Sequence record: MN988522.1
Reading direction: 5' to 3' (one strand)
DNA length: 64,000 nucleotides
The position numbers and the translations under genes were made by a program. Position 1 is the stretch's first letter. The number at the start of each line of letters is the position of its first letter. Below are positions 5,497 to 63,762 of this stretch, piece after piece. The notes under the pieces are model-generated. The model saw only the letters and a list, made by a program, of their open reading frames with translations. It was not told where the DNA came from and searched no databases.

Positions 5497-5503
5497 TATT
5501 ATT

Positions 5504-5532
5504 CAGCGAATCTGACGTCTAAAAGCCTTCCT
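5504..5532 (+). promoter_or_regulatory. Bipartite motif CAGCGAA-N12-AAGCCTTCCT, candidate phage-specific promoter (copy 1)
   Basis: Intergenic, 32 nt upstream of the HD/polymerase operon; identical boxes and spacing at 17112-17140 (-) and 63734-63762 (+). Confidence 0.65.
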
Positions 5533-5564
5533 TTCTACGACCCCTTAGATGAGATCGATACTTT

Positions 5565-6236
5565 ATGAAAGACATTGTCTTTAATCCTCTCCTTAAGATC
5601 TCTAGTGTGAACCGGTATTCCGGAGTTTATCTGACCAAGAATGAGTCAGTTTCAGATCACACTACTCAAACTGGATTACTATGTATTCTAGTTGGCAACG
5701 AGATCAATAAACGTCTTGCGAAATTGAAATCCTCTGTTAGAGTGAATCTCGAGAAATTAGCCTACAAGGCTTTAATCCACGATCTCGAGGAATCCAAGAC
5801 TTGTGACACTCCTAGAAATGTTAAATACTTCAATGACTTGATTTATCAAGAATTTGAGAGAATGGGTGATCAGGTTGTTCTTGAACTATCTGAACTCTAT
5901 GAATTTCCTGAGCTCTATGAGCAATGGAAAAATGCTAAGGATAAGACTCTAGAAGGGTATATTCTTAAAATCTGCGATATGATTCATGTCGTACGTAAAC
6001 TAGTTGATGAAGTTGTACTTCTTGGAAATCTTAACATGCTTCAGGTAGCACTGGAGTTGAAGGATCATCTGAAGAAGACTCACGATTATATTAATAAGAT
6101 TACAGATCTACCTGCTGAAGCGATTGACGTCTTTAATGAATTGACGATTTTCTCATTGGATACCGTTAACTATATTCTTAAGAAACATCAATCGGAGATT
6201 ACAGATTATAACTTTACATCTCTGAAGAGCGCATAA
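5565..6236 (+). CDS. HD-domain 5'-deoxynucleotidase (YfbR-like)
   Basis: NRY...ESVSDH...HDLEES..CDTPRNVKYFN...KICD matches the YfbR pattern; its stop overlaps the polymerase start (TAATG). Confidence 0.8.
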   Translation: MKDIVFNPLLKISSVNRYSGVYLTKNESVSDHTTQTGLLCILVGNEINKRLAKLKSSVRVNLEKLAYKALIHDLEESKTCDTPRNVKYFNDLIYQEFERMGDQVVLELSELYEFPELYEQWKNAKDKTLEGYILKICDMIHVVRKLVDEVVLLGNLNMLQVALELKDHLKKTHDYINKITDLPAEAIDVFNELTIFSLDTVNYILKKHQSEITDYNFTSLKSA

Positions 6237-9200
6237 TGTCCTTAGAAATTGAATCCATTATTAACAAAGTTGATCTGACTAGTGATGTTCGTGTATGTCA
6301 CATGTGCCCACTAGCTGAGAAGTTTGGTGGATGTGATAATCTTGGACGAGTATCTTTTGAGATTGTAGGTCAGAATCCTAAGGTTCTACTTGTAGGTGAA
6401 GCACCTGCAGCTGAGGATCTGAAATCTGAACGACCATTCAGTAGTCAGTCTGGTTCATTCTTGAGAATGGCGATGGCTGAAATTGGCATTAATGATTACG
6501 CTCTAGCGAATGTGATCATGTGTCAACCTAAGAGTGTAAATATCTACACTCCGACTCCTGAAGAGTCCGCTCACTGTAAAGCACATATTCAAAGATTTGT
6601 TGAAAAGTACAAACCTGAGACAGTCATCTTGCTCGGACGAGGAGCATATGAAGTCATTCTACCAGAGAGTTACTTCGCAGGTCAGTCAGTTACGAATGTA
6701 ACCAAGAAGAAGGCTATCGAAATTGATGGTGTACGTTATGGAGCAGCATTTCATCCATCGTATATCTTCCGTAATGGTGGTAAAGAATCACCACAGTACA
6801 TCGACTTCTTGAATCGATTGAGACGACTGACTCAGAATAGTGTTGATGCAGAATTCATCGTACCGTTTAAGATCGTTAATCTCGATCAACTAGATGAGAC
6901 TCTCGAAGAGTTTGATGTCTACAAAGAACTAGGCTTCGACTATGAAGGTACCTCGCTTGATCCGTATGACGTCAATTATCAGGTTCTCGGACTTGGTATG
7001 TCATCGATGGACAAGGCAGTTTATATCGACTTTCATCGAGAGCCTACTCAAGAAGAAAAGAATAAGATATCTGACTTCATTCGTAAGAAGCAGATGTGGG
7101 TTTATAACGTCAACTATGAAACCAAAGTTACATGGTCTAAGTTGAGTAATGATCTTATTCGATTCCACGATGCGATGACTCTTGTAAAGATCGACTGTTC
7201 TCCTGGATCACTGAAGGACAATGCTCGTAAATATCTGAATGCAGAAATCTGGGAAGAGATCGTAGGTAACTTGACTACCTTGTTCTACGATATCTTCCAA
7301 TTTATGAAGAAGATTGAGGAGAAATCTCCTAAACTATATAATGCTTGTAGACAAGCTAATATGGAGGCGATCTATCTTCTTAAGGAAGATACTGCTGAGA
7401 AAATCACTGGTGGTAAGAAGAATCCTAAGGTTACGAGATATCGTACCAAGCAGGCAGATCATGCAGACTACATATCTGCTAAGATCTCTGCACTTAGAGA
7501 ATTCTGCTCTGATGAAGATATCCAACGTGGATTTACTAAGTTTCCTTACGAGTGGGCAGCTGTTCCTCCGAAGATTCTAGGTGAATACTGCTGCTACGAC
7601 TCTTATTACACACTAGGTCTTAAGAATCATCTGTGGGATAAGTATAAGAGCGTTTACCAGTATTATATCACCCAAGGGTGGCTAGGCTCTACGATGGAGA
7701 GCTATGGTCTGAATTGGGATGATGATAAAGCTTCTGAGCATGAACGATTCTATCTCGTTGAAGCTACGACATGCTTGAATCAGATCATTCAGAAATTGGA
7801 TTTTGGTGAGAAAACTCTTGATATTCATACAAGAGCAAGCATGATTTTCAATGACTCTAGTCTTCCTGATGCTAGGAAACTCATTGATCTGAAAGGTATC
7901 TTTAATCCAGGTACTCCAGATAAACTTAAACAGAAACCCTTCTGGGATAAGTACGTAACTGACTTTACGACTGCAATATCCATCTATCTTGTTCTCAGTG
8001 AACAGATTCTAATGTCTCCAATCATTCCTGACCAAGCGATTGAGTTAGTCGATCGTCAAGATCTCAATAAAGCTATTGAGAATTTGATGTCAGTAGATTG
8101 GACTAAGTACGATGGAGTTGATCTTAAGACTGCCAAGTCAATTCAGAAATTGATGATGGATCTTATTGGTACACTCGATGAGAAGATCGGATGGAAGCTA
8201 TATGCATTCAGAAGTGATGTTCTAGAGTGGCAATATAAAGCTCACGAAACGTACGGTGGACTAGATATCGACAATCGTGAGACTTGGACTCCTGAGTTCG
8301 AGTTGTTATATCTTCTGAGAAGATATAAAAAGGTTGAGAAGAGTAAGAATACGTACATCAATGGTAAGGTAGGTAGAGCACGAGTATGGTTGTCGACAGT
8401 CGATGATTACCAGAAGCCTCCTGTTCGACTGAAGCGTTACTTTGATGTTATGGAAGAGAGACAGTGGAAGAAGTATGAACTTCAGCATAACGAGAGATGG
8501 ATTCTTGATACAGAATTCAATGTTGCTGGTGCAAATACTAAACGATGGAAAGCAGCTATTCATACTGTTCCATGGGGATCAGAACTCCGAGAGATCTATG
8601 CATCTCGTTGGTGGGATGGTCTGTTTATGCATTACGACTACTCTCAGGCAGAAGTTCGAATTCTAGCAGCTATCTCTCAGGATAGAGCACTACTGGAAGC
8701 ATTCGCTGATCCTGATACTGACATTCACATGTTCGTTGCATCTCGAATCTGGAAGAAAGATCCTAAGGATGTGACTCCAGCTGAGCGTCGATATGCTAAG
8801 GTCTGCTCGTTCTCGATTTTGTACGGTAAGTCTATCGAAGGATTTGCTACTGAACATACCAAGGGTGATGTTGCAGCAGCTAAGCGTATCTTTGATGACT
8901 TCTATGCAGCATTCCCTCAAGTTAAGGAGTGGATTGAGAAACAGCATAGAGATGCGAAAGTATCTGGTAAGGTCTTTACCTTATTCGGAGATCCTCTGTA
9001 TCTTGATATGTCGGACCCTAATGGTGCTATGCGTGATGCTCAAAACTGGCCAATTCAGTCCTCGAGCAGCTGTGTAGCAGGATGGGCTATCTGGATGAAC
9101 TACGAGTTTTCTAGAAATAGAAACATTCCGATTCTTCCAATGGTCTTTACTCACGACTCTCACGATATGGAATTCAGATGTCAACATCTATTCGAGACGA

Positions 9201-9565
9201 TTGATACTGTTCTCGAAACTGCAGTTGATCTACCTAAGCGTAGATTTAATCTTCCGATGAAGATCGACTGGGAAATCGGTGTTAATCAGTCTGATGCAAT
9301 TGAGTTCAAAGAAACATCTCGATTTGATGAAGGTCGAGGTCGTACGTATCACTTTGAATGCAATGAAAATGCAATGATGCCTGTATTCGATCGTCTAAAG
9401 AACTACTTTGACATCGAATATGAAGTCACTTCTAGAGAGACTGAGAGAGCATCGCTGAAAGAAATGTTCGTTGCAAGACGAGCATTCTCTAAGTATCTTG
9501 GTACAGATGTAACCGTCGTAGGTGGTAACCTCAAACTAGTGAAGAAAAATGGGATAAAAATATGA
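6236..9565 (+). CDS. polA: Family A DNA polymerase with N-terminal family-4 uracil-DNA glycosylase domain and 3'-5' exonuclease
   Basis: UDG: CHMC, VGEAP, RPF, ANVIMC, FHPSY. Exo: FDYE, YCCYD. Pol motif A DYSQAEVRILA, motif B RRYAKVCSFSILYG, motif C THDS. Confidence 0.92.
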   Translation: MSLEIESIINKVDLTSDVRVCHMCPLAEKFGGCDNLGRVSFEIVGQNPKVLLVGEAPAAEDLKSERPFSSQSGSFLRMAMAEIGINDYALANVIMCQPKSVNIYTPTPEESAHCKAHIQRFVEKYKPETVILLGRGAYEVILPESYFAGQSVTNVTKKKAIEIDGVRYGAAFHPSYIFRNGGKESPQYIDFLNRLRRLTQNSVDAEFIVPFKIVNLDQLDETLEEFDVYKELGFDYEGTSLDPYDVNYQVLGLGMSSMDKAVYIDFHREPTQEEKNKISDFIRKKQMWVYNVNYETKVTWSKLSNDLIRFHDAMTLVKIDCSPGSLKDNARKYLNAEIWEEIVGNLTTLFYDIFQFMKKIEEKSPKLYNACRQANMEAIYLLKEDTAEKITGGKKNPKVTRYRTKQADHADYISAKISALREFCSDEDIQRGFTKFPYEWAAVPPKILGEYCCYDSYYTLGLKNHLWDKYKSVYQYYITQGWLGSTMESYGLNWDDDKASEHERFYLVEATTCLNQIIQKLDFGEKTLDIHTRASMIFNDSSLPDARKLIDLKGIFNPGTPDKLKQKPFWDKYVTDFTTAISIYLVLSEQILMSPIIPDQAIELVDRQDLNKAIENLMSVDWTKYDGVDLKTAKSIQKLMMDLIGTLDEKIGWKLYAFRSDVLEWQYKAHETYGGLDIDNRETWTPEFELLYLLRRYKKVEKSKNTYINGKVGRARVWLSTVDDYQKPPVRLKRYFDVMEERQWKKYELQHNERWILDTEFNVAGANTKRWKAAIHTVPWGSELREIYASRWWDGLFMHYDYSQAEVRILAAISQDRALLEAFADPDTDIHMFVASRIWKKDPKDVTPAERRYAKVCSFSILYGKSIEGFATEHTKGDVAAAKRIFDDFYAAFPQVKEWIEKQHRDAKVSGKVFTLFGDPLYLDMSDPNGAMRDAQNWPIQSSSSCVAGWAIWMNYEFSRNRNIPILPMVFTHDSHDMEFRCQHLFETIDTVLETAVDLPKRRFNLPMKIDWEIGVNQSDAIEFKETSRFDEGRGRTYHFECNENAMMPVFDRLKNYFDIEYEVTSRETERASLKEMFVARRAFSKYLGTDVTVVGGNLKLVKKNGIKI

Positions 9566-10293
9566 GTCGAGCAAAATCACTGATCGACATGATTAAAGGA
9601 ACCAAGAACGAGTCTGGTGACGATGACGACGAAATCTCAAATCGTCGTCGTGGTGGTACTTGGATTGATCCTCATCATGTTGACGCAGCATCCAAGAATC
9701 TGAAGCGTACTCAGTCATTCTACAAGAAGGCTAGTAATGCTAGCTCAGTTGAAGATCAAGAGTATTGGTTAGCTCGAGTCTTTAACAAGAATGCTGTTGC
9801 TAAGAGAATCTCCTCTGGATTCTATAACAAGGAAGCTAAGGCAGGAGTCGTAGGCGTCGATGACGTTGAAGATCTGTCAGCATCTCTTGTTACAGGTAAT
9901 CCAAGAGCATCGGGTCGTGTTACGACTAAGGATCACACACGTAATCCTGAAGAGATCTTTGCTGCTAACCAGATCGTTAAAGCTCTCTACGATACGATTG
10001 ACAAGAAGTGGCCTGGACGTCCTCAGAACAAGATGGTTCTGACATACTTCCTCAAGGTCAATAAAGCTGATCATCTTATTAACTTTAAGCTTCCATACGA
10101 TGATCGTGTGGAAGAAATCATCTCTTCTATTGAGAAATATGCTAAAGACAATAACTCCAAGATTACTTGGACTACTCCTAAGCAGTTTCAGAATTTTTCA
10201 GGTATTGAAGACAGAATGTATGCAAAGGTCATGCAGTTCCTAGCAGATAATGCTGTAGAATTGGGTGCTCTTATCATTCGAGGTAAGAAATAA
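9562..10293 (+). CDS. Putative sigma-factor-like protein A, with candidate capsid-targeting N-terminus
   Basis: Paralog of 10736-11392 (shared EYW..VF..N and VL[TS]YF blocks); NPEEIFAANQIVKALYDTID...VLTYF resembles the sigma region 3-4 linker; starts MSRAKSLIDMI. Confidence 0.45.
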   Translation: MSRAKSLIDMIKGTKNESGDDDDEISNRRRGGTWIDPHHVDAASKNLKRTQSFYKKASNASSVEDQEYWLARVFNKNAVAKRISSGFYNKEAKAGVVGVDDVEDLSASLVTGNPRASGRVTTKDHTRNPEEIFAANQIVKALYDTIDKKWPGRPQNKMVLTYFLKVNKADHLINFKLPYDDRVEEIISSIEKYAKDNNSKITWTTPKQFQNFSGIEDRMYAKVMQFLADNAVELGALIIRGKK

Positions 10294-10640: not shown

Positions 10641-10679
10641 AGGCGCTTACTTGTTGGGTAAATGGGTGCAGTTAGGCTC

Positions 10680-10711
10680 TTGGAGGGATTCTTATTCGGT
10701 GAGCCCTCCAA
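10680..10711 (+). promoter_or_regulatory. Intergenic hairpin upstream of sigma-like B
   Basis: TTGGAGGG / CCCTCCAA 8-bp inverted repeat, no U-tract. Confidence 0.4.
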
Positions 10712-10735
10712 GGCTTCCAGAAAGAGGGTAATGTA

Positions 10736-11392
10736 ATGGCTAGCGATAGACAGATGAAAGGTTACATCTGGGGAGAGCAAATCCTGGATCATGCTCACAT
10801 TGAGCATTATGCAAGGGCGATGAGATCCGATGATGTACGTACCGAGGAGTACTGGTACCAGGCAGTATTTCATGGGAAGAACCACTCTAAGGTTCTTCAG
10901 TCGGAAGTCTTTCATAAGAAAATCCGCAACAACGTTACAAATAAAGTAGAAGTTGAGACTCTGGTTTCTACTTCTAACTCTGACGTCGTTAATGATGTTC
11001 TAGCAGAGGAGAGAAAGAATGAAGTAAAATATTCTCGAGTTATCGAGGATGATAAGGTCGGTAATATGTCCGACTATCTTCCCGATGCAACTGTTGGGTT
11101 CTCAGTTATTATCAGAGAAATAGCTGACAAATGCAACGATGATGAAATCAAGGTCCTGAGCTACTTTGTATGTCAGGAACATCTGGATAATATCCTATTC
11201 GAGGGGAATTCGATTCATTCATCAAACGATCGCTTCAATCGTACGATCCTAGGTATCTGGGAAAAGAATGTGAAGAGCATCAATGATCTGAATCGATTTG
11301 TAGGTACTCGTGCTCGTGCTGATAAAGCTAGGTGGAGACTCTGCAATCTCTTGAAGAAGGAGTATCCTGAACTCTTGTCAGGAAAACGATGA
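10736..11392 (+). CDS. Putative sigma-factor-like protein B
   Basis: Paralog of 9562-10293; C-terminal KSINDLNRFVG..ADKARWRLCNLLKK resembles a region-4 HTH; located next to beta-prime. Confidence 0.5.
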   Translation: MASDRQMKGYIWGEQILDHAHIEHYARAMRSDDVRTEEYWYQAVFHGKNHSKVLQSEVFHKKIRNNVTNKVEVETLVSTSNSDVVNDVLAEERKNEVKYSRVIEDDKVGNMSDYLPDATVGFSVIIREIADKCNDDEIKVLSYFVCQEHLDNILFEGNSIHSSNDRFNRTILGIWEKNVKSINDLNRFVGTRARADKARWRLCNLLKKEYPELLSGKR

Positions 11393-11628
11393 GTCCATCT
11401 AACAAGCCCTATGACCCAAAGTTAGACACAATCATCTACGAAAATAGACATCCTGAAACGGGTTTGTGCATCTCGGTGCATAAATACGGAAGCAGTGAAC
11501 CGAAGATCAAGTTAGGTCCAAGAATCGTCGGTGACGACTCCAAACCTGTCTACTTGAAATTAGGTAGAATATCTATAAACGAGTTTTTGTGGATATCCGA
11601 GGTCCTAAAACCCTACGTTAAATCTTAG
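11389..11628 (+). CDS. PC4-like small ssDNA-binding/transcription cofactor
   Basis: YDPKLD...ISVHKYGSSEPKIKL...KLGRIS pattern typical of small PC4-fold proteins. Confidence 0.5.
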   Translation: MSPSNKPYDPKLDTIIYENRHPETGLCISVHKYGSSEPKIKLGPRIVGDDSKPVYLKLGRISINEFLWISEVLKPYVKS

Positions 11629-11640
11629 AGGATCTAAAAC

Positions 11641-14600
11641 ATGCAACTTTCTCTGAAGCCAGTCTCTCCAGAATCTGTACTCTTGACTTCACAAGGAGAG
11701 GTCAAGTCGTATGAGACTCTGAACTTCAAGACAGGTCTACCTGTTCGAGACGGTCTCTTGTGCCAGAAGGTATTCGGACCGATTAGAGACTACGTATGTG
11801 AATGCGGCAAGTACGATGGTAAGAAATACCAGGGACATACTTGTGAGAAGTGCGGTGTTACGGTAGCGAGTTCACGTGCTCGTACTGTGAGAATGGGTCA
11901 TATTGATCTTCAAGTTCCCATTCTTAATCCGTTGATGATCGAGTCGATCGAATCGATTATAGGTCTCCCATCCAGAAAGATGGAGGACTTTATGAAGAAC
12001 AAGATCTGCCTGAAATTTTCAGCATCTGGTACAGGTAATCTTGTTCGTAAGGACGGTACACGAGGTATCGCGTATTTTGTAGATCCTAAGGAATCTGATC
12101 CTCGATCTCCTACTCTGCAGCATACGAAGTCGTCTCTGGTTCTTTATGAACTCTTGACGGATCTCGATATTGAAGAGACGCTCAAAGTCAATGGATCCAA
12201 GATCCTGAAGACCTATGTGCAGAAGAACTTCCCTCTTTCTAATCTCTTCATTCGTTATCTACCGGTATCTCCAGCAGGATACCGTCCAGTCACTCGTATG
12301 AGAAACTACTATTCTCAGCATCCCAAGAATGACCTTTATCAGAAGATCATTCGACGTACTCTGCGAGTGAAGGAACTGGTTAATATCAATGCAGACTCAA
12401 TGATTCTTCAGGAAGAGGCAGGCATTCTGTATAAGTCTGTCGATCAACTCTTCACTGGAGGAGCTCGAGATGGCGATGGGAACCCTCTTCCTGGAACCAT
12501 TGAGAAGATGATGGGTAAGAGAGGTATTCTCCGAGGAAATCTTCTCGGTAAGCGTACCGACTACTCTGGACGTTCAGTTATCACTTCAGCAGGTGATCGT
12601 GTAGAAGTGGACCAGATTGGTCTACCTCGTAAGATGGCATACATCTTGTTTCGTCCTTTCATTCTCCGTTATCTGATGACGGAGTATCTGGATCATTATA
12701 CTGAAGCACTGAAGCACTACGAGAAGAAGACTGTTATCGCACTGAAGTCTCTCGAGATGGTAGCTAAGGATTATCCGATCATCATGAATCGTGCTCCTAC
12801 GCTTCATAGATACGGTGTAATGTCTTTCCGTACCAAGTTGGTAAATGGTAAGGCTATCCTCGTTCATCCGATTGTATGTTCTCCATTCAATGCAGACTTC
12901 GACGGAGATACTGTAGCTATCCACTTGCCTCTTTCAGCTAAGTCTGTTCAGGAGTGCAAAGATTATCTCATGCCTCAGAACAATCTCCTGTCTTCACTTG
13001 ATGGTGATCCGATCATCAATATGTCGCACGAGATGGTTATCGGTCTTGCTATCATGTCTCGTATTAAGGATCATGATAAGGGATTCGGTACATTCCGACG
13101 TATGGATGAGCTCGAGTATCTTCATACTGTCACCAATCCTCAGACTAGCCGTCCTACACTTGAGATCTACGATAGAATCAAGTGGAAAGATGAACGAGGA
13201 GTGACAGAGACGTGCTATGGTCGACTTCTTCTCGAGCAGACATTCAAGACCAAGAATCTTCCGAAGGACTTCTCTAAGAAGACTATTCGTCGGATGATCA
13301 GTGATGCGTACGACAAGCTTGGACCTGATGAACTGATTAAGGTACTGGATGTAGCTACTCAGCTTTCATTCAAGTATGCTACGAACTCTGGTTTCTCAGT
13401 TTCGATTGATGATTGTAAGGTACCTTCTACGAAACCTGCTAAGATTGCGAAAGCTAGAGAGCAGGAAGCTGAGAATTATCGTCAATTCGATAACAATGAA
13501 ATCAATCTTGCAGAGCGTCGAGAGAACAATATTCGTCTCTGGAACGATGTCTTTGAAGATCTTCATCACGATTGGATGAAAGAAGCAGGTGAGGACAATC
13601 CGGTAGTTCTTATGTATACTACTGGTGCTCGTGTTAGTAAGTCTCAGGTCAATCAGATCGGAGTCGCTAAGGGTCTTGTATCCAATGCACTCAATCAGAT
13701 CATCGAGAAGCCTATGGTTAACTCCTTCCGTGAAGGATTGTCGACGTTTGAGTACTTTGCATCTTGCTCTGGATCTCGTAAGTCCATGGCAGACAAGAAG
13801 AATCTGACTCCCAAGTCTGGTTATCTTACACGTCGAATGATTACTGCTAGCCGAGATTTCTTCATTAATTCAGATGATTGTGGTACCGATAAGGGTATCA
13901 TGCGTACGATGAAGTCCTCGTATGGACGTTATCGTTGCGACAATGGTGAGATGATTGGTACGAACAATAGTGAAGAACTCGTTAAGGTTCGTAGTCCGAT
14001 TCATTGTGAGTCGCATGGTGGTATCTGCGTTAAGTGCTACGGTATTGATCCTGCTAAGCGTAAGATCGTCACGAAGGGGTCCAACGTAGGAGCTATTGCA
14101 GCTCACTCGTTGACTGAATCTACAACTCAGATGACGATGCGTACCTTCCATACATCTGGTGCAGTCGTTCTGAAGGATAGTCCGATGGTCATTACTGCCC
14201 AGAAGGATGGTAAGATCAGCTGGGATACTCTTCATCCTGTCTACAGCAAGATTCATGTTGTTGCAGATATGGAAGATTGGGATACACCTCTCAATGATCG
14301 ATTGACGTATACAGTTCATAACAAGATGTCTCGCATTCTTGTTAAGGATGGTCAGTCTGTCAAGAAGGGTGATCCTCTAGCGATCTACGTTGATGAAGAT
14401 CTTGAGAGCGACGACGTCAGTGGATCGCTCCCTAAGATTGAATCTCTGTATGAAGGTCGAGTACCTCCGAAAGCGTACAAGTCAGTTATCTCGAAGGTAG
14501 CTGGTAAGATTGGTATTAACATCGGAGATGAAGGTCTTAAGATCTTCGTTGATGGTGAATACCAAGGTACTGCTCATCCTAAGACTCCGGTATTCGTTGC

Positions 14601-15024
14601 TCAAGGTCAGTATGTTGAAGCTGGTCAGACTCTCTCGTTTGGTTCTCCAGACGTAGTAGGTTTGTTCAAGGAGACAAAGGATCTTGATCTCGCTTACAAG
14701 GTCTTTGAGAAGACTCTGATGGATATCTACAATAAGGAAGGTCTCCAGCCAGTACCAACTCATTCGGAGATGATCTTCAGAGCGATGTCTAATCTGGTAT
14801 ACACCGAGAGTGGTCCTTATGGTCTTCGATCCCATGGAGACAAGGGTAGCATTATGCTGAAGGGTATTACTCAGATTGGTGCGAATCATCCGTCCTGGTT
14901 GAAGTCAATCGGATTCGGATGGGTAGCTCAGACGATCAGAACTTCTGCTGTGAATCTTGCTACCACGTACGATCTTCCTACCGAACGTCTGATGTCTGGT
15001 GAATTGATTTACGAGGATAAATAA
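11641..15024 (+). CDS. rpoC: DNA-directed RNA polymerase beta-prime subunit, unsplit, bacterial type
   Basis: Zn ribbon DGLLCQKVFGP..CECGKY..CEKCGV..RMGHI; GNLLGKRTDYSGRSVI; NRAPTLHR; catalytic NADFDGD at 12889-12909; bridge helix TPKSGYLTRR; trigger loop TQMTMRTFHTSG. Confidence 0.97.
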   Translation: MQLSLKPVSPESVLLTSQGEVKSYETLNFKTGLPVRDGLLCQKVFGPIRDYVCECGKYDGKKYQGHTCEKCGVTVASSRARTVRMGHIDLQVPILNPLMIESIESIIGLPSRKMEDFMKNKICLKFSASGTGNLVRKDGTRGIAYFVDPKESDPRSPTLQHTKSSLVLYELLTDLDIEETLKVNGSKILKTYVQKNFPLSNLFIRYLPVSPAGYRPVTRMRNYYSQHPKNDLYQKIIRRTLRVKELVNINADSMILQEEAGILYKSVDQLFTGGARDGDGNPLPGTIEKMMGKRGILRGNLLGKRTDYSGRSVITSAGDRVEVDQIGLPRKMAYILFRPFILRYLMTEYLDHYTEALKHYEKKTVIALKSLEMVAKDYPIIMNRAPTLHRYGVMSFRTKLVNGKAILVHPIVCSPFNADFDGDTVAIHLPLSAKSVQECKDYLMPQNNLLSSLDGDPIINMSHEMVIGLAIMSRIKDHDKGFGTFRRMDELEYLHTVTNPQTSRPTLEIYDRIKWKDERGVTETCYGRLLLEQTFKTKNLPKDFSKKTIRRMISDAYDKLGPDELIKVLDVATQLSFKYATNSGFSVSIDDCKVPSTKPAKIAKAREQEAENYRQFDNNEINLAERRENNIRLWNDVFEDLHHDWMKEAGEDNPVVLMYTTGARVSKSQVNQIGVAKGLVSNALNQIIEKPMVNSFREGLSTFEYFASCSGSRKSMADKKNLTPKSGYLTRRMITASRDFFINSDDCGTDKGIMRTMKSSYGRYRCDNGEMIGTNNSEELVKVRSPIHCESHGGICVKCYGIDPAKRKIVTKGSNVGAIAAHSLTESTTQMTMRTFHTSGAVVLKDSPMVITAQKDGKISWDTLHPVYSKIHVVADMEDWDTPLNDRLTYTVHNKMSRILVKDGQSVKKGDPLAIYVDEDLESDDVSGSLPKIESLYEGRVPPKAYKSVISKVAGKIGINIGDEGLKIFVDGEYQGTAHPKTPVFVAQGQYVEAGQTLSFGSPDVVGLFKETKDLDLAYKVFEKTLMDIYNKEGLQPVPTHSEMIFRAMSNLVYTESGPYGLRSHGDKGSIMLKGITQIGANHPSWLKSIGFGWVAQTIRTSAVNLATTYDLPTERLMSGELIYEDK

Positions 15025-15225: not shown

Positions 15226-15931
15226 CTTGCAATACGATGATGGAATTCTTAAATCAAATAGGGAGTCTCTCGTAAACATACGAGCTCCATTCTTCAAACG
15301 GATTGATCGACGATCTCGCAAGTCGTCCATCGAGAGATTAATGATCTCACCTGATACAACAAGAAATTGTAGTCAGATTAAGAGATTTCTCGTTCCGTTC
15401 AACGATAAGTACTTGTACAGCATGCATGTGACTTATCGTGACGACTTAAAGTGTCAATCTATTTATGACACTAACAAGTCTCTCAAGCGAATCCTCCGAT
15501 CTAAAATGTTAATGTCAGCTGTGAACAGGATAAATGAGTATCCTCAACTCAAAGCAGACATATTGTCTGTAATCAAGCTTGTAGTTAATTCTTGGGAGTT
15601 TGATGGTCTTATCACAGACATTGAATGGCTCCAGGATGAAAATCTACTGGATACTGTGATATCTAAGTGGAAACTGAAGAAGTACGAATCCTCTACAGAG
15701 CGAGGGTCAGTGATCAATCTCTTAATAAAGAGTTTTGATGGAGTTCCACTTAATCTTCTATCTCATCTAGAGATGAAGAAAATCAGTATTGAGGATACTG
15801 ACATTGAGGACGTTAAGTTTAAATGTCCTCTGATATTAATGCGATCGAATTCATCTTGTGCAGGATTCATATCTAAGTCCTTGGATAAAGGACTACCTGT
15901 GAGTCTGTTCAAGATTGATATAAAAGAGTAA
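15218..15931 (+). CDS. Hypothetical protein
   Basis: 237-aa ORF filling the space to the terminator. Confidence 0.65.
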   Translation: MYNLQYDDGILKSNRESLVNIRAPFFKRIDRRSRKSSIERLMISPDTTRNCSQIKRFLVPFNDKYLYSMHVTYRDDLKCQSIYDTNKSLKRILRSKMLMSAVNRINEYPQLKADILSVIKLVVNSWEFDGLITDIEWLQDENLLDTVISKWKLKKYESSTERGSVINLLIKSFDGVPLNLLSHLEMKKISIEDTDIEDVKFKCPLILMRSNSSCAGFISKSLDKGLPVSLFKIDIKE

Positions 15932-15988
15932 AAATAAAGGCCACTAGGCGGGACCCTTCTCGGAGGATTCACCTAGTGGCCTATTTTT
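15930..15988. terminator. Bidirectional intrinsic terminator between convergent modules
   Basis: AGGCCACTAGG (15938-15948) / CCTAGTGGCCT (15972-15982) stem, with an A-tract on the left and a T-tract on the right. Confidence 0.85.
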
Positions 15989-15993
15989 GTGTC

Positions 15994-16248
15994 TTATGGA
16001 AGAAGTGGTACGAAACTCTTCAGCTTATTGTACACATCATCCTGCTTACCCATTTCAGTCGAATACTTATCAAGAATCGTCTGATTATCTGGGAATTCAT
16101 TACCTTGATTAGCTACCCAGTCGACATAATCATGCCAATCCTGGTCATCGTGAAGATCACGATGCTGCTTAATCAGATTTGCATATTCAGCATCTGTGAA
16201 TTCATGCAATGATGAAAGCTTCTCAAGAATGTCTTTAGCTCTACTCAT
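15994..16248 (-). CDS. Small acidic protein with candidate capsid-targeting N-terminus
   Basis: GGAG-6nt-ATG at 16248 gives MSRAKDILEKLSSLHE. Confidence 0.7.
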   Translation of the reverse strand: MSRAKDILEKLSSLHEFTDAEYANLIKQHRDLHDDQDWHDYVDWVANQGNEFPDNQTILDKYSTEMGKQDDVYNKLKSFVPLLP

Positions 16249-17043: not shown

Positions 17044-17111
17044 AATGTACATCCATTTTAGTTTATTTAATGAGGATTATCACTTTACACAATTATAAAG
17101 TGTGCACAAAG

Positions 17112-17140
17112 AGGAAGGCTTATGTCGCCTTCCTTCGCTG
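17112..17140 (-). promoter_or_regulatory. Bipartite motif copy 2, overlapping a terminator-like hairpin
   Basis: Minus strand reads (ATT)CAGCGAA-GGAAGGCGACAT-AAGCCTTCCT; AGGAAGGC/GCCTTCCT also forms an 8-bp stem just after the SGNH gene. Confidence 0.6.
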
Positions 17141-17155
17141 AATCCTTAGCTTTAT

Positions 17156-19000
17156 TTACGTTATTAACTTATTCTTCTCACTAGCAGGTATCCCATTAGC
17201 GATTCGATCCATCATTATAGGATACGGATGAACACCATCTTGTGTAACACTAGGTCGTACAATAGATCCTACAGGTAAAATTGCAGCACGTGGAATTGAG
17301 AGTATAAGAGTATTTCCACTAACACTTAGAATAGTAGTCGTAGATAGTCTAGCAATTCCATCAGGCGCTGCATAAGTATTGATTTCTTGTTCTCCTCTAA
17401 ACAAGTTAGCATTAGCAACTTGAATAGATGAATAAGTTTCTACTCCATCAGTACCAGCTTGGACAGTGACAGTTGTGCTAGGTAGTTCTAACGTACCTGG
17501 CCATGCACCACCCTTTACACTTGATACCCATGCGTAATAAGTATCAATAGAATCATCGCAACATGATGATGTCTTTGCTAAGATATCATTTCTCAGGCGC
17601 CATTTACCACTATTGTCTGTTCCATCAGCAGGCCATGAATTCTGAGATGAGTATGTCTGGAATTCTGCCTGAAGATATAGATTACTAGCAGTGATCGACC
17701 CTGTAGCAGGAGTCGTAGCAGACCCTGCAAAGTTATAAGTGAAACTATTTGGACCTGTGACTGTTATAATCACATTACCATTGTACTCAGTTTGAGTAGC
17801 TCCACCAATCGTAACTGTTTGACCTGTTACAAGTCCGTTAGTACCAGAAGCGATAGCCGCAGTTACAACAGTTCCTACAGATGTCAATGTGACAGTACGT
17901 GTAGTCACTGTACGACCGAGAGGGGTCGTCGCAACGATCTTAACACCTGGATAACGTGCACGTAGTCTGGTAACCAAGCTGCGGTAATTGGTATTGAAGA
18001 ATGTCGTATAAACTGTACTAGTATCATTCTGACCCATCTGATTCAAGATAACAGTAAAAGGTTTCTTATTGTTATTGAATGCAGTGATTTCATCAAGAAT
18101 TGCCCATCGACGAGTAGCAATCGTACTACCACTACCTGTAAGTTCGAGTACAGAGTGTGATCCTGGCATACCAATCATAAAGTGAGGAAGACGTCCAATA
18201 CCGTCTGCTTTATCTAGCCATCTACGTAACCATCCTAAGTTACCTCGAGCATCAGCACCTGCACTATATTCTTGACGAGCTTCACCGATACTATCAACGA
18301 CTGCTAGTACTACAGGTCGACCATCCCAGTCACCTTTAGCAACCATAAAATCAGGACCGTAGTATGCTGGTTGAGTTACTAGAATGTAATTTATATCGAG
18401 TGATGCAGTGCAGTCTGCAAGTGGTGTATCTTTATAAGCTAGAAGTGTATTGAGATCACTAGCGCCCCATATTCTTTCACCACGATGTTTCTGAATACGA
18501 TATACTGGCCAGACTTTCTCACCTACTGCAGTATGATAGAAAGTCCAAATTTCCATCTCACTTTCAGGAGCAACATCGCGTAGAACTAATTCATCCGTCC
18601 ATGCACCATTACTCTGGTCAGCAATTGTTATAGTATCTAGACCTGAGAACTTGCACTGATAGAATACGCCAGCAACTTTGATAAACAAAGCATCGACTAC
18701 TACAGAGTTACCAGGAGTACCAATTGTACCAGTTACAACTGTTTCTTGAGGTGAATTTCCACCTTCTGTTGCAGCGAATCCAGATAGATGGAATTTGAAT
18801 GAACGTGTTGCATATGAAGGAGTATTTACAATAATCTTACTGCAAAGATAGTTCGTGCCAGATGCTGCTGTAACTAAGTTACCAGATGGTACACGATTTC
18901 TAGTTGCAAAGAACATATAGCGACTAGGATCAACTGGACGAGCTCTTCGTCCATTAAATGCAGTATTAACAATTTTTAATGATTTTTTGGATATAGCCAT
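17156..19000 (-). CDS. SGNH/GDSL hydrolase-domain virion-associated protein
   Basis: Block I VVDSIG, block III GQND, block V DGVHP; a beta-rich domain is inserted in the fold. Confidence 0.75.
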   Translation of the reverse strand: MAISKKSLKIVNTAFNGRRARPVDPSRYMFFATRNRVPSGNLVTAASGTNYLCSKIIVNTPSYATRSFKFHLSGFAATEGGNSPQETVVTGTIGTPGNSVVVDALFIKVAGVFYQCKFSGLDTITIADQSNGAWTDELVLRDVAPESEMEIWTFYHTAVGEKVWPVYRIQKHRGERIWGASDLNTLLAYKDTPLADCTASLDINYILVTQPAYYGPDFMVAKGDWDGRPVVLAVVDSIGEARQEYSAGADARGNLGWLRRWLDKADGIGRLPHFMIGMPGSHSVLELTGSGSTIATRRWAILDEITAFNNNKKPFTVILNQMGQNDTSTVYTTFFNTNYRSLVTRLRARYPGVKIVATTPLGRTVTTRTVTLTSVGTVVTAAIASGTNGLVTGQTVTIGGATQTEYNGNVIITVTGPNSFTYNFAGSATTPATGSITASNLYLQAEFQTYSSQNSWPADGTDNSGKWRLRNDILAKTSSCCDDSIDTYYAWVSSVKGGAWPGTLELPSTTVTVQAGTDGVETYSSIQVANANLFRGEQEINTYAAPDGIARLSTTTILSVSGNTLILSIPRAAILPVGSIVRPSVTQDGVHPYPIMMDRIANGIPASEKNKLIT

Positions 19001-53720: not shown

Positions 53721-54368
53721 TTATCCTCCTATCGCATAATACCATGAATTTGTATCTGAGATAGACTGTTCGATTTCGGAAACGATTTGTTGACCTTCAG
53801 AGATGAGCTCATTTGAGTCCATCTGGATAGGGAAATCTTGAGATGTGAATGCTCTTCTAGATCTGCCGAGAGATAGTAGAAAATTGCCCTTGATATGAGT
53901 GAGGAGTTTATACTCAGACTCATCCAAATCAGGAATATCAACGTCTACAATCTTCTTATCGTCTACCGTATCAAATTCAATCGTGAATTTATACTTGAAG
54001 TGAGCTGTAATCTCAACTTCAGAAGCATTAGCGACATGAAGTTTACCTTCATCCTCGTTGTACTGAAATACTACAGGTATCAATTCTAAGTTAGCACCTA
54101 TATTAAAGATACCAAAGTTAGCAGGGATACCTGTAGGATAGACTCTAGAAATCCAGGAAGGCTTCTCGTCGGGAGGGAATACATAAGGCGTAGAAGGAAT
54201 ATAACGATATAACTTCTTCGTAATAGGCTTATGCTTTTCGTAATACTTTAGACTACGCTTTACAATAAGCCAGAATCTATTCATATCGAAGTTGATAAGA
54301 CTGATATCACCGACGATGAATTGTCCTGTTTCAAGTAACATATAGTCAATTATCTCGGTGAGTTTCAT
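53721..54368 (-). CDS. Neck/adaptor protein (gp13-like)
   Basis: IKGNFLLSLGRSRRAF..IQMDSNELISEGQQ resembles the gp13 C-terminus. Confidence 0.6.
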   Translation of the reverse strand: MKLTEIIDYMLLETGQFIVGDISLINFDMNRFWLIVKRSLKYYEKHKPITKKLYRYIPSTPYVFPPDEKPSWISRVYPTGIPANFGIFNIGANLELIPVVFQYNEDEGKLHVANASEVEITAHFKYKFTIEFDTVDDKKIVDVDIPDLDESEYKLLTHIKGNFLLSLGRSRRAFTSQDFPIQMDSNELISEGQQIVSEIEQSISDTNSWYYAIGG

Positions 54369-59300: not shown

Positions 59301-59369
59301 GATTATATCCTACACGGAGGGTCGTGCTACCGTCCCTCCTCCTGGAGTTATCTGAGGATTAAACGACTA

Positions 59370-60914
59370 TTAAGATGGTGCTGAACCATCGTCGTCTTTA
59401 CTATCCGAATCTTTAACAATCTTAGGTTCTAATTTAGAAGTCTTGGGATTGGGTTGATTCGTATTTCGGCTATTGCCTTTATGTTCACCATCGTATTTCA
59501 AGAAGTTCAGCTTATCCTGAAGGAATGTCTTCAAGGCATCTTCGTCAACAATATCATTCAGACCTGCCTCTTCAATGTCATTCAAGAAGGTGAAAGTATT
59601 ACGCAACATACCAACGGTAGCGTCATGATACTCTAGCTTCTCGAGTTCGTCAACATTGACTGTTTCATTAAGGAACTGAACTTCTAGATCTGCGAGAGTT
59701 ACATCGCGAGTAGCAGTACAATTCTTCAAGTGAGTTAAGCAGATTTGAAGAACACCAGATGCAATACTGTTCTGGATGGCTTTAATCTTACGCAGATATC
59801 TAGCGTACTTCTTAATAGTCTCTGTCTTGGATGCTCCACCGAAGAAGAGCTCTGTAGGGAATCCAATTGATGTACAGATTACGTCTCGAGTATCTCGAAT
59901 CGTATTCATAACGTCACTGACATTACTATTATTTCGAACGTCGATATTCTGCATACCACCTTTACCAGCAAAGGTAGGTACAACTTTAATTCGACCTGCA
60001 ACAGTCAGAATATCTGATGCAGTCAACATTCCTGACTGTGGATCAACAGCAATCTTCTTATTGAAAAGATTTTCATACTCTCTTGCAATATTGAATGCTT
60101 CCTTAGGGTCAGTTGATGCAGGAACTTCTACACCAACGATCGATCCAGCTGTAATATCAGAAAGCTTAACTGCAGGAATCAATTTCTCAAGAAGTTGTAG
60201 CTCCTTGATCTTTGATAGAACTCCGAACAGAATAGGCTTGCCAATACGAGCATGAGATGGTAGCTGAGATAGTCCTTCAATTTTGGACAATTCCTGCTTC
60301 TCATGTTCTGAGAATGTAGGTACTCTGATCTTGCGACCAGAAAGAATAAAGTGAGCGATCTCGTGAGGATCTTTCAATTCATAAGAATCTTGATTAGAAC
60401 GATTCTTAGTCTTGACAAGAAACTTGAACGGATAACCTTGACGATAAAATCCGAGAATTGCTGATGGATTCAGATCGTCAGTAATTTCAGTCACACCCTT
60501 ACCAGGTTGGATTGTCATACGAAGAGGATACTCACCATATGAAAGCAAGTCTGGCGTAATATCATTTACGATATTATCGAGGTCGAACATCTTCTGAAAC
60601 TTCTCAAGTTCTCTATTGTACTTCTCATTAGGAGAAGTAACTTTGAGAATCTCACCTGAACTGATGTCTGGAGTGAGAGCGTCTTCAGAGATATTTGTGA
60701 GAAGAGCATCAACCAGATAATAACCTTTGACCTGATTGAACTCTTTAAGATAGTCATCTCTCGAATTCACTGCTGATGTGAAGACAGATGCCATAGCACT
60801 AGCTACAACTGGAGATGCTTTAGGAGTTGCACCTGTAGACTTCTTAGCCACAGGTGCAGGAGTAGTCTTGGCTTCGAATACCGAGCCATATAGTCTTTCA
60901 AAGAGTCCTGCCAT
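59370..60914 (-). CDS. Portal protein (gp20-like)
   Basis: Position after terminase; LVDALL..ISEDAL, YGE..LR and FPTELF patterns. Confidence 0.82.
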   Translation of the reverse strand: MAGLFERLYGSVFEAKTTPAPVAKKSTGATPKASPVVASAMASVFTSAVNSRDDYLKEFNQVKGYYLVDALLTNISEDALTPDISSGEILKVTSPNEKYNRELEKFQKMFDLDNIVNDITPDLLSYGEYPLRMTIQPGKGVTEITDDLNPSAILGFYRQGYPFKFLVKTKNRSNQDSYELKDPHEIAHFILSGRKIRVPTFSEHEKQELSKIEGLSQLPSHARIGKPILFGVLSKIKELQLLEKLIPAVKLSDITAGSIVGVEVPASTDPKEAFNIAREYENLFNKKIAVDPQSGMLTASDILTVAGRIKVVPTFAGKGGMQNIDVRNNSNVSDVMNTIRDTRDVICTSIGFPTELFFGGASKTETIKKYARYLRKIKAIQNSIASGVLQICLTHLKNCTATRDVTLADLEVQFLNETVNVDELEKLEYHDATVGMLRNTFTFLNDIEEAGLNDIVDEDALKTFLQDKLNFLKYDGEHKGNSRNTNQPNPKTSKLEPKIVKDSDSKDDDGSAPS

Positions 60915-60922
60915 TTGCTTCT

Positions 60923-62758
60923 CTACTTGTAAACTTGGAAGTCACTCGTACCTAGAATGCCTTCATAACTATTAGTAGGCTTACTACTTGAAGCGATAGC
61001 CTCAATGAATTCCTCCGTTGTCGTATTCGCACGATAACGATTCATACCGAGTTTAGCACTCCAGATAGATCCGCAGATAGCATCAGCACCGTCTTTACTA
61101 CCTTCCATAGGATGGTCGACCTTACGAGTACCGACTTCAAGTTCTTTCAATTCTTTACTTAGGATAGGATGCTTGATCCCATGCCATCTACTCTCAAGAA
61201 TTGCAAGCTTGAATTCATTGTAAGGATCGAAAGTTCTATCACAAGATAGAAGTTCAGTATTGAAACCTTCTAGGAGCAAGTCCTGACGAAGATTTGTTGA
61301 CTGATAACCGTCGGTAGTAATGCAAGTGACTGGATAACCTCGAGCTCGAAGATCAATCATAAGATTCTTGATCTTATAAATTGGTACTTCTTGACCGATA
61401 CGCGCCTCGATGTACATGACAAAGTCAGTACTGTATACCGGAGAGGACTCAACGATCTCCTTACCTGCGATAGCGTCAAATCGCTTCGTAGTAATGATAC
61501 CATCAAGTCTCGTCGATGCAATACCAGTTTTATCGTGTTTGATACCAAGGTCAACATGAATAAATCTCGGACGACGATCCTTGTCAAGTTTAGTGAAGTC
61601 AATAAACTCAATCAATCTCTCATTCGGATTGAAGAAGTCAACAGATACCACATCCTTGTGAACAGGATTATCTTTCTTGAAGGACTCTTCGATCTTCTCC
61701 ACTGATGGAATGAATCGATGAGCTGCCTGAGTACTCTTACCAGCGATGTCCTGAAGTGCTCGGTAAATATCTTTCTCGAAGTTTACCTGATACTCAATTG
61801 GGACATCCATGATGTAGGACTCGTCAATACCAATCGTTCCAGTTTGTGGAGTGATAATGAACGGATCCTTGAATTGGTTACCTACGAATACCTTAAAGGT
61901 CTGACCAGAATACTGAATCTTCCACGGAGGGAGAACCTTCCAGATCGGGTTGTCCCAAATTCTAATCTTAGGATCGTCTTCTCTACCCTTAAGTAGATAA
62001 TCTTCGATGAATGAACCTGAGTCAGTCTTCGAGGAGTCGATCCACATACGTCCTGGGTACGATTCATTCTTCATGAAACGTGACTGGAGACGAGCTAGAA
62101 CACCGTTATAGTTCTCGACTGCCTGACCTGCAACCTTATTCTGGAAGTTAATTTCCGATAGAATAGTTGAGAAGACAGCTTTACCGAGAACGTCTGATGG
62201 ACGAGAACCTGTAATGATATCGATATTGTTAGGAAGAATCGACAATTTACCTGAAGTCTTCTTCATCTCTGATTTGAAGAATGGTGAATTCTTAAGGTAA
62301 GTAATGATCTGGTCGTAAAGAACGGTACCAGCTAGACTCTTCGTAGCGTTCATCAGAGCCAAGACGATCTTGGTACTCTTGATGAGATTATACTTTTCAT
62401 GCGGATCCTTGAGATACAGCAACTTACATAGATCGTAAGTCACACCTGCAAGTGCGCATGTAGACTTACCCTGACCAATCGATCCTGTAAGAACGATCTC
62501 AAGATAAGGTGAGAAGAATGGATTAGGGTAGATCTCATAAAGAGCGCTACGCCAGATCGGATAGGTATTGTCACCAAACATGTCACCCATGAAGTAATCA
62601 TCATCGATGAACTTGTCAATGGTCGGAGGAGCATCTACGTACCCTCCCATTTTAGCGAGAGTACGTAGTGTTTCAGTCTTACCATGAGCAGCCATGAGAT
62701 TCTGTACAAGAGCTCCCATCGACTGATCAACAGGACTCGTGTTATTCTCAGTGCTCAA
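60923..62758 (-). CDS. Terminase large subunit
   Basis: Walker A TGSIGQGKS; RNase H-like nuclease acidic residues HVDLG, TTDGYQS, KDGADA. Confidence 0.92.
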   Translation of the reverse strand: MSTENNTSPVDQSMGALVQNLMAAHGKTETLRTLAKMGGYVDAPPTIDKFIDDDYFMGDMFGDNTYPIWRSALYEIYPNPFFSPYLEIVLTGSIGQGKSTCALAGVTYDLCKLLYLKDPHEKYNLIKSTKIVLALMNATKSLAGTVLYDQIITYLKNSPFFKSEMKKTSGKLSILPNNIDIITGSRPSDVLGKAVFSTILSEINFQNKVAGQAVENYNGVLARLQSRFMKNESYPGRMWIDSSKTDSGSFIEDYLLKGREDDPKIRIWDNPIWKVLPPWKIQYSGQTFKVFVGNQFKDPFIITPQTGTIGIDESYIMDVPIEYQVNFEKDIYRALQDIAGKSTQAAHRFIPSVEKIEESFKKDNPVHKDVVSVDFFNPNERLIEFIDFTKLDKDRRPRFIHVDLGIKHDKTGIASTRLDGIITTKRFDAIAGKEIVESSPVYSTDFVMYIEARIGQEVPIYKIKNLMIDLRARGYPVTCITTDGYQSTNLRQDLLLEGFNTELLSCDRTFDPYNEFKLAILESRWHGIKHPILSKELKELEVGTRKVDHPMEGSKDGADAICGSIWSAKLGMNRYRANTTTEEFIEAIASSSKPTNSYEGILGTSDFQVYK

Positions 62759-62766
62759 GTGAAATC

Positions 62767-63270
62767 CTATTCTTCAGTTGTTTTCTTAGGTGGAGCAGCT
62801 ACAGCATTAACATTCAAGTTAGATAGAATCGCAGAGACGATCGCTTGAACGTCAGTACCTGCTTGAGTCTTATCTGCTGGATCAGTTGCAGCTAGAGCGA
62901 GTAGCTGAGCTTCAACATTACCCCAGTCGATTGACTTAAGAGTCGATCTAACATAAGACGAAGATTCGTTAAGTGCTTCAACACCCATCTTGTAGAGACC
63001 AACCAGTTTGGAGGGTTCTAGATTACGAATCGTATCTTCACTGAAGACCTGACTTTCAAGATTATATACAAGCGCAGATAGATTCGAGACCCTCTTAGCC
63101 TGAACTTCTGCTAGACCGAAGAGGGCCAGTTGAAGACCGACCTCCTTGATTCTCCAGTCATTGAATCCATTTACCTTACGATCGACAAGCTGAATAGCGT
63201 AGTCAATCGATTTCGTTAATTCTGGTGCTTGGGAACTTTCTGAGAATTCATCAGCCAGATCATCACTCAT
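62767..63270 (-). CDS. Putative terminase small subunit
   Basis: Helical 167-aa protein directly upstream of TerL with an AAGGAG SD. Confidence 0.5.
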   Translation of the reverse strand: MSDDLADEFSESSQAPELTKSIDYAIQLVDRKVNGFNDWRIKEVGLQLALFGLAEVQAKRVSNLSALVYNLESQVFSEDTIRNLEPSKLVGLYKMGVEALNESSSYVRSTLKSIDWGNVEAQLLALAATDPADKTQAGTDVQAIVSAILSNLNVNAVAAPPKKTTEE

Positions 63271-63296
63271 CAGGTTCTCCTTAATTGAATAAAGTT

Positions 63297-63660
63297 GGTG
63301 TCCCGATTTCTCAGGACACCATAGTATTATTACATTATATAAATGCCCTTATAAACTGGGCGCTACTAAAAATTGATAAAGGGAGGAGATCAAATAACTT
63401 TGACGAGGATAGTTACGATCTCCTCCCATGCTACTCAGAAAGAGGAGTAGCCACTCAGGCGACAAGACAGACTAGAGAGCTCCAGCACAAACTCAATCTA
63501 GCGAAACGTCTCGTCAGCCAACTACCAAGGAGAGGTTCCCAGTAAGAAGCGCTTCTCATGTATTATGAAAGCTAGTTCTTCCAGAAGGGTTACCTTAAAG
63601 AACTTTCCGACCGGCGTATTGCGGCGCACCCTTCTTCTGAGGAGGACCGACTTACATTAT
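63297..63660. other. Hairpin-dense non-coding region (candidate structured RNA/leader or packaging/origin element)
   Basis: Inverted repeats at 63297-63320, 63381-63427 (11-bp perfect), 63430-63451, 63545-63556 (12-bp palindrome) and 63574-63604. Confidence 0.45.
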
Positions 63661-63733
63661 CAATTATTGGATAATTGTATAATAACTCACGACAAAATAA
63701 AACGCTCTTTCTTTCTTGATTCACGGTTACCTA

Positions 63734-63762
63734 CAGCGAATTGAGCTCTCAAAAGCCTTCCT
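63734..63762 (+). promoter_or_regulatory. Bipartite motif copy 3
   Basis: CAGCGAA-TTGAGCTCTCAA-AAGCCTTCCT, pointing out of the window. Confidence 0.6.

Follow-up and report, generated by a model that had tools for sequence, protein, structure and literature searches.

Three copies of a bipartite intergenic motif in the final 64 kb of the genome of Rhizobium phage RHph_TM40 (TM40; Kleczkowskaviridae, genus Cuauhnahuacvirus) belong to a genome-wide family of approximately 25 sites, here termed class M, which we consider probably to be a phage-specific class of "middle" promoters. The DNA analyzed, hereafter the window, comprises 64,000 nucleotides (record positions 143,432–207,431) of the 207,431-bp genome in sequence record MN988522.1. 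A preliminary description had proposed that the motif is a promoter read by a phage RNA polymerase with a sigma-like paralog. The sense orientation of the sites, their intergenic placement, their tight distance to start codons and tRNAs, selection on both boxes, and conservation in distant relatives all favor the promoter half of that proposal, whereas the sigma-like reader was not supported. Genome-wide motif counts are based on the full TM40 sequence, assembled from pieces, and gene positions follow the deposited annotation; coordinates of individual features are collected in Table 1.

The motif, CAGCGAA-N12-AAGCCTTCCT, occurs in the window at 5504–5532 (+), 17112–17140 (−), and 63734–63762 (+), with identical boxes and identical 12-nt spacing. 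These three exact matches compare with none in each of 100 dinucleotide-preserving shuffles. All three copies are intergenic and each points along the local genes; CAGCGA and CTTCCT are 17 nt apart, and ATT precedes copies 1 and 2, as originally reported. CTACG does follow copies 1 and 3, although with a 2-nt difference in offset between the two. Two further statements require narrowing: the count of exactly three applies to the exact 17-base pattern, and arose because matching was exact and limited to the 64-kb window, whereas about 25 good sites exist genome-wide; and the spacers, though not fully alike, are not wholly unrelated, sharing across the family a weak A-R-S-K-T-C-S consensus at positions 11–17.

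Copy 1 lies 7 nt past the stop codon of an ASCH gene and 32 nt ahead of the ATG that opens the HD 5'-deoxynucleotidase/UDG-PolA operon. The spacer of copy 2 (AGGAAGGC) is complementary to its box 2 (GCCTTCCT), forming an 8-bp terminator-like hairpin followed by CUUUGUG (minimum free energy [MFE] −15.2 kcal/mol, z = −3.2). Copy 3 falls between the minus-strand structural block and gene 001 of the plus-strand block; because it stands at the head of the latter, there is no upstream same-strand transcript for it to terminate. Counting the three copies, the window has five instances of the box 2 sequence (AGCCTTCCT), always on the sense strand. A weak site with three mismatches, located in the coding sequence of DNA ligase, probably does not function as a member of the family.

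A mismatch-tolerant search followed by a weight-matrix scan identified the approximately 25 good sites, of which 24 are on the plus strand and one (copy 2) on the minus strand, so that each lies on the sense strand of its genes; 22 of the 25 are located beyond 52 kb. Box 2 (A-G/A-CCTTCCT) is essentially invariant across these sites, box 1 (vAGCGAA) is degenerate, and the 12-nt spacing is constant. Box 2 is followed by y-TT-k, and purines are enriched at positions 37–39 of the 25-site alignment, consistent with a start site. Among 8-mers of the plus-strand block, AGCCTTCC shows the strongest enrichment: within the 50–159 kb segment it has 20 sense occurrences against 0.45 expected, and 3 antisense.

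The placement of these sites is tied to the genes that follow them. At 11 of 24 sites, the element ends 26–33 nt ahead of an annotated start codon (mode 29), while box 1 at the same 11 sites lies anywhere from −21 to +200 nt relative to the upstream stop codon; a tight start distance combined with a loose stop distance indicates that the element belongs to the downstream gene rather than the upstream one. At most sites the gap to the start codon is too short to accommodate another promoter. Two sites precede tRNA genes, leaving gaps of 9 and 17 nt to the 5' ends of tRNA-Ser and tRNA-Asn; this argues against a signal acting in translation only. The downstream genes are mostly concerned with nucleotide metabolism, replication, and tRNA, and include thyX, topoisomerase II subunits (annotated as gyrase A and B), a 5'-3' exonuclease, and the HD and UDG-PolA operon.

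Both boxes are under purifying selection, with the spacer free to vary. In ten ortholog comparisons among TM40, Y65, TM30, and TM2_3B, substitutions were found at 0 of 160 box positions versus 14 of 120 spacer positions (Fisher p = 4e-6). In Y65, copy 1 retains identical boxes and flanks, with 7 of the 12 spacer bases and position 20 changed; copy 2 is identical, and copy 3 differs only in the base before box 1. At record 133522 the motif forms an island of identity within a stretch that is only 84% identical, and at record 63823 and 129397 the changes are confined to spacer bases.

Relatives at intermediate distance were absent from the phage collection and from IMG/VR, and a search of viral and metagenome contigs with the beta-prime locus returned none. 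A scan of IMG/VR with AGCGAA-N13-AGCCTTCCT gave 15 single matches on unrelated contigs, none carrying two copies, which we judged to be chance occurrences. The protein database and exact-protein look-ups did yield more distant relatives, with beta-prime homologs 39–55% identical to that of TM40. The contigs examined (beta-prime 40–55% identical) are syntenic where they overlap, sharing the order ligase, primase, exonuclease, dCMP deaminase, helicase, HD (in two lineages), PolA, three small genes, beta-prime, and two small genes; the beta-prime region of these relatives faces convergent lysis genes.

The motif is retained in these phages. A site orthologous to copy 1 precedes HD/PolA in metagenomic relatives whose beta-prime is 41–55% identical, reading CGGCGAA-N12-AAGCCTTCCT-TATTAG in L023, AAGCCTTCTT in L021, and AAGCCTTCCT in L025. 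In 39 kb of the relative at 41% identity, AGCCTTCC is again the top strand-specific 8-mer (6 sense and 0 antisense, against 0.17 expected). Vibrio phage Va2 carries a near-identical core, AACCTTGCT, in 24 copies on the gene strand, 16 of them 19–41 nt before start codons, and these copies are followed by nn-kTG, as in TM40. The gene layout of Va2 also resembles that of TM40, with a lone beta-prime (28% identical) and, adjacent to it, a homolog of the A1 family described below (E = 1e-14). The presence of the same core in a Vibrio phage argues for a reader that is phage-borne rather than host-specific. No ARCCTTSCT motif was found in the 17 kb examined of YerA41, a phage with both beta and beta-prime. 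Escherichia coli phage EP_H11, which has an intron-split beta-prime homolog, contains intergenic motifs of its own, AAGCCCGTTCTTTTGGG in six copies and AAAGGCTGTTAA in five (contig L039, record 14675–43217); AAGCCCGTTCTTTTGGG is preceded by A/T-rich TTTTTCAAATAAACGA blocks and followed by a GC hairpin. EP_H11 may prove a convenient system in which to study signals of this type.

Inspection of every plus-strand intergenic gap revealed a sister class, class E, with the consensus gATAGGTkCAsTTAGGGTC-N5-AAGGGATTCTTCTTTGAAGG and 17 genome copies, all on the plus strand. Thirteen of the 17 lie within 0–62 kb, and one ends 22 nt before gene 001. The weight matrices of the two classes align in a single register (score 12.2; the best of 1000 column shuffles scored 11.4). 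The box spacing is shared, as are a central TTAGGsTC and a 3' TTCyTTCTTkG, whereas box 1 and the initial four bases of box 2 (AGCC in class M, GGGA in class E) set the classes apart. Class E elements are usually followed by a variable hairpin, and class-E-like elements occur upstream of the A1 gene at the orthologous place in four relatives. A likeness of class E to the SP6 promoter (TAGGTG...) is presumably coincidental.

A third kind of signal consists of TATAAT-like elements (cTcTATAAt, TTATATAAT) upstream of many structural genes (minus-strand starts at, e.g., 63270, 55553, 50044, 39759, 19000, and 17043); these are candidate late promoters, distinct from classes M and E. Canonical sigma70-type promoters gave 16 matches, compared with 32.7 in shuffled sequence, and showed no bias toward the gene strand or the early region. 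The TM40 genome thus appears to contain three signal classes with complementary distributions, which is the usual pattern of temporal promoter classes.

The window also encodes an RNA polymerase beta-prime homolog, 32–35% identical to cellular beta-prime, and two small paralogous proteins, A1 and A3, upstream of it. A1 and A3 are related at 94% probability in hhalign and are the sole two members of their family in the genome. Homologs of A1 adjoin beta-prime in all five relative lineages; A3 homologs are found in four, namely those whose contigs reach far enough upstream. Neither protein matched a sigma factor in Pfam, PHROGs, or PDB sequence and profile searches, or by Foldseek on AlphaFold2 models, and the sigma-like paralog of the preliminary description is therefore not supported. 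The models have pLDDT values of 59 and 72.6, and the only significant Foldseek matches against PDB and BFVD were A3 itself and A1. Similarly, no sigma70_r2 or r4 domain was detected in a scan of ten large open reading frames (ORFs) and of the six small proteins encoded around beta-prime. No T7-like RNA polymerase is annotated among the 383 features of the record, the proteome not having been scanned exhaustively for one. No beta subunit was recovered by Pfam among the ten large ORFs of unassigned function in TM40, or by phmmer, with the YerA41 beta as query, among all ORFs of TM40, Va2, and the relative at 41% identity. YerA41 itself encodes beta-prime N, beta-prime C, and beta.

Under the promoter interpretation, the bipartite signal would consist of box 1 (vAGCGAA), a rigid 12-nt spacer, and box 2 (wAGCCTTCCT) followed by y-TT-k, and transcription would start a few nucleotides downstream of CCTTCCT, yielding leaders of approximately 20 nt. 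About 25 class M copies would drive nucleotide-metabolism, replication, and tRNA ("middle") genes, with two further copies serving the prohead-core operon and the first plus-strand gene; the 17 copies of class E, with the same architecture, would serve mainly the early-gene region. Where spacer and box 2 are complementary, the element additionally encodes a terminator-like hairpin for transcripts arriving from upstream, and RNAs initiated past box 2 would not include the 5' arm of that hairpin.

Several observations weigh against this interpretation. Class M lacks an A/T-rich element resembling a −10 box. By the beta searches, TM40 does not encode a complete phage RNA polymerase, and A1 and A3 have no detectable similarity to sigma factors, DNA-binding proteins, or other known families. 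At two sites (record 17559 and 64845) a strong canonical terminator follows within approximately 30–80 nt, before the next gene; the combined site and terminator span record 17559–17653 and 64845–64960, and if these sites are promoters they could give rise to short non-coding RNAs or to attenuation. Three of the six sites in the relative at 41% identity are inside or at the edge of coding sequences. Strong, terminator-like hairpins, in which the spacer supplies the 5' arm and box 2 the 3' arm, occur at 5–8 of the 25 sites, and the site at record 61208 sits within a terminator with an 11-bp stem.

An alternative is that the element functions at the RNA level, as a processing or cleavage site for a phage protein, or as a regulatory site in the 5' untranslated region of polycistronic RNA, where it would separate mRNAs and tRNAs or control translation or stability. 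The strictly sense-strand occurrence of the motif, its fixed distance to start codons, and its placement directly before tRNAs would all be expected of such a signal; in addition, the pyrimidine-rich GCCUUCCU resembles an anti-Shine–Dalgarno sequence, several sites lie within hairpins, and some overlap the 3' ends of upstream ORFs. However, the 25 sites have no common secondary structure, which rules out a universal RNA hairpin: copies 1 and 3 (MFE −0.2 and −2.5 kcal/mol) and about 10 other sites do not fold. Spacers pair with their own downstream sequence no better than with that of other sites (permutation p = 0.14), and no Rfam family matches the motif. The Shine–Dalgarno sequences downstream are not complementary to it at most sites, and copy 3 has no upstream sense-strand gene whose transcript could be processed. 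A rigid two-box spacing with a free spacer is, moreover, typical of a two-domain protein reading DNA. We therefore regard an RNA-level role as unlikely.

Alternatively, the boxes could bind a phage repressor, activator, or antiterminator loader, with transcription starting elsewhere. The high information content and conservation of both boxes, and the lack of a recognizable melting element in the motif, are compatible with an operator, as are the TATAAT element that follows copy 2 and the TAGAAT or TAAGAAT that follows several other sites. These additional elements do not provide a general start site, however: TAGAAT-like sequences occur at only about five sites, at offsets that range from 5 to 10 nt, and most sites leave only 26–33 nt between box 2 and the start codon, with no second conserved element. 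The lack of sigma70-like promoter enrichment on the gene strand likewise counts against this possibility, which we consider less probable again than a signal in RNA.

A sequence-specific terminator or attenuator, in which box 2 and UUCUU would serve as 3' arm and tail to punctuate long plus-strand transcripts, is very improbable, in spite of the resemblance of the canonical terminators of this genome, which end in GGCC-TTTTCTTT, to GCC-TTCCTTCTT, the good hairpins ending at box 2 in 5–8 sites, and the GGCTC-TGA-GAGCC hairpin gained by copy 1 of Y65: copies 1, 3, and many other sites have no hairpin, copy 3 has nothing upstream to terminate, the invariant CC at positions 27–28 is odd for a U-tract, the position follows the downstream start rather than the upstream stop, the real convergence point of the two gene blocks has a classic bidirectional terminator instead, and efficient termination at these sites would leave genes 26–33 nt downstream without a promoter. 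As a whole, class M does not show the G+C-rich hairpin and U-tract of an intrinsic terminator. The hairpin subset, which includes copy 2 and the sites at record 63823, 128419, and 61208, is nevertheless enriched over random sequence (p = 5e-4), and box 2 with TTCTT may often have been co-opted in this compact genome to supply the 3' arm and tail of terminators that act on incoming transcripts.

Comparison with known systems further delimits the promoter interpretation. The spacing of 17 ± 1 bp characteristic of the sigma70 family is found at all 25 sites, but the box consensus is unlike TTGACA/TATAAT, as had been noted, and the T4 late promoter sequence TATAAATA is likewise absent from class M. 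Promoters of extracytoplasmic function (ECF; group 4) sigma factors are similar in being bipartite, with two high-information boxes, rigid spacing (here the 17 nt from CAGCGA to CTTCCT), and a downstream box other than TATAAT; they differ in that the class M sequence is not GGAAC-N16-CGTT or another known ECF motif, and in that its box 2 is an invariant block of 9–10 bp. T4 middle promoters, which combine a MotA box with a sigma70 −10 element through AsiA appropriation, offer a parallel in being specific to the phage and in serving the delayed-early, replication, and tRNA genes of a T4-like myovirus, with an upstream box in place of the −35 element and distinct motifs for temporal classes. However, none of the 25 TM40 sites has the (a/t)(a/t)TGCTT(t/c)A box or a TAnnnT −10 at fixed distance, neither MotA nor AsiA is annotated in TM40, and TM40 brings a beta-prime subunit of its own.

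The gp28 and gp33/34 promoters of Bacillus phage SPO1 also form successive phage-specific bipartite classes with unusual boxes, and are read by the host core with phage specificity proteins; their counterpart in TM40 would be two sister classes and two paralogous candidates. Unlike A1 and A3, the SPO1 factors are recognizable members of the sigma70 family, and the promoter sequences are unrelated. The PeSL cassettes of T4-type phages resemble class M as repeated intergenic cassettes of approximately 45–50 bp that border small ORFs, often with a stem-loop, and cassettes of this kind may act as substrates in the modular shuffling of genes; a canonical sigma70 early promoter is part of PeSLs but not of class M, and the stem-loops of class M are optional and site-specific. 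The promoters of the non-virion multisubunit RNA polymerases of jumbo phages (phiKZ, AR9) are comparable in being non-canonical and read by a phage enzyme related to beta and beta-prime that has no classical sigma. Those phages, however, have split sets of beta and beta-prime and short A/T-rich motifs near the start, whereas TM40 has one intact beta-prime and no detectable beta. T7-like single-subunit promoters differ from the bipartite class M, with its variable spacer, in forming a contiguous block of approximately 20 bp that spans the start.

These comparisons bear on what might read a class M promoter. An ordinary sigma70 holoenzyme is probably not what reads it; more likely, we infer, the reader is an RNA polymerase with phage components, whether the phage beta-prime, proteins of the A1/A3 family, or both. 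A1 and A3 are candidate specificity factors, and the occurrence of two paralogs alongside two sister motif classes is a correlation only. In a more specific form of this proposal, which we put forward tentatively and regard as doubtful, the lone phage beta-prime would replace that of the host within the host core, a non-sigma protein of the A1/A3 family would confer specificity, and the pyrimidine-rich promoter may suit modified DNA. Such a hybrid system would be common to the Rhizobium phages (Cuauhnahuacvirus), the Vibrio phage Va2, and related uncultured phages. In TM40, window positions 5565–9565 encode a YfbR-like HD 5'-deoxynucleotidase followed by a 1109-aa UDG-PolA fusion polymerase. 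Several members of the UDG-PolA "SP15-like" polymerase group have hypermodified thymidine (PMC13697223). Since the phages named above fall in or near that group, the pyrimidine-rich promoter may, under this proposal, be an adaptation to transcribing modified DNA.

The TM40 genome is divided into a plus-strand block (genes 001–329, record 83–159,362) and a minus-strand block of lysis and structural genes (record 159,425–206,701), parted at the record ends by a non-coding region of approximately 800 bp. A strong bidirectional intrinsic terminator, GGCCACTAGG...CCTAGTGGCC with A and T runs on its flanks, occupies window 15931–15994, the exact point at which the two blocks converge. A+T-rich blocks of TATAAT/TTATAA-type repeats occur at three intergenic places (window ~63850–64000, just downstream of copy 3, and record ~67,480 and ~107,760), and could be strong host-type promoters or origin-like regions. 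A gene for a TROVE (Ro60-like) RNA-binding protein (record 140226–141794) lies within the 24-tRNA region of the phage. Among the relatives, L021 encodes a PolA with an intein (4045–8079; Pfam Intein_splicing between two DNA_pol_A halves), and the polymerase region of L025 and L034 is broken up into several ORFs.

Table 1. Positions of class M and class E sites and of associated genes and elements in TM40 (window positions unless marked as record positions)
Feature	Position	Strand	Description
Class M, copy 1	5501–5539	+	ATT-CAGCGAA-TCTGACGTCTAA-AAGCCTTCCT-TTCTACG
Class M, copy 2	17105–17143	−	Ends 68 nt upstream of prohead-core (T4 gp68-like) gene
Class M, copy 3	63734–63768	+	In divergent non-coding region of ~800 bp, 320 nt upstream of gene 001
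Weak site, three mismatches	753–781	+	CAACGAA-N12-TAGACTTCCT, within DNA ligase coding sequence; position weight matrix score 22.6, versus 34–53 for good sites
Box 2 alone	2863–2871	+	AGCCTTCCT in small ORF, 95 nt before dCMP deaminase start; no recognizable box 1
Box 2 alone	54155–54163	−	Sense strand, in ORF of structural block; no box 1
TATAAT element	17092–17097	−	14 nt downstream of copy 2; candidate late promoter
Class E, window copy	10661–10703	+	AATGGGTGCAGTTAGGCTCTTGGAGGGATTCTTATTCGG; upstream of the 218-aa A1 gene and beta-prime
Class E, other 16 copies	Record 50, 6907, 14394, 18268, 21436, 27097, 30021, 32240, 34997, 44222, 46117, 46693, 58172, 61827, 107137, 142551	+	
A3	9562–10293	+	243 aa; fold without known match; paralog of A1, beside beta-prime in relatives
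A1	10736–11392	+	218 aa; paralog of A3
RNA polymerase beta-prime homolog	11641–15024	+	1127 aa; intact, bacterial-type, Rpb1 domains 1–5

Literature searches on the family, on transcription, and on the motif returned nothing on transcription, promoters, or the motif in Kleczkowskaviridae, and no paper on the motif or on transcription with a lone beta-prime. If class M is a promoter, its sites together with those of class E would serve to map approximately 25 middle and 17 early transcription units across the 207-kb genome, and the element itself would be a compact, orthogonal promoter part. It would also link the core A-R-CCTT-S-CT to a module composed of a lone beta-prime and two paralogous proteins. 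The recurrence of a lone beta-prime and paralog module in phages of both Rhizobium and Vibrio raises the question of how a phage uses a single large subunit of RNA polymerase, and what takes the place of sigma.

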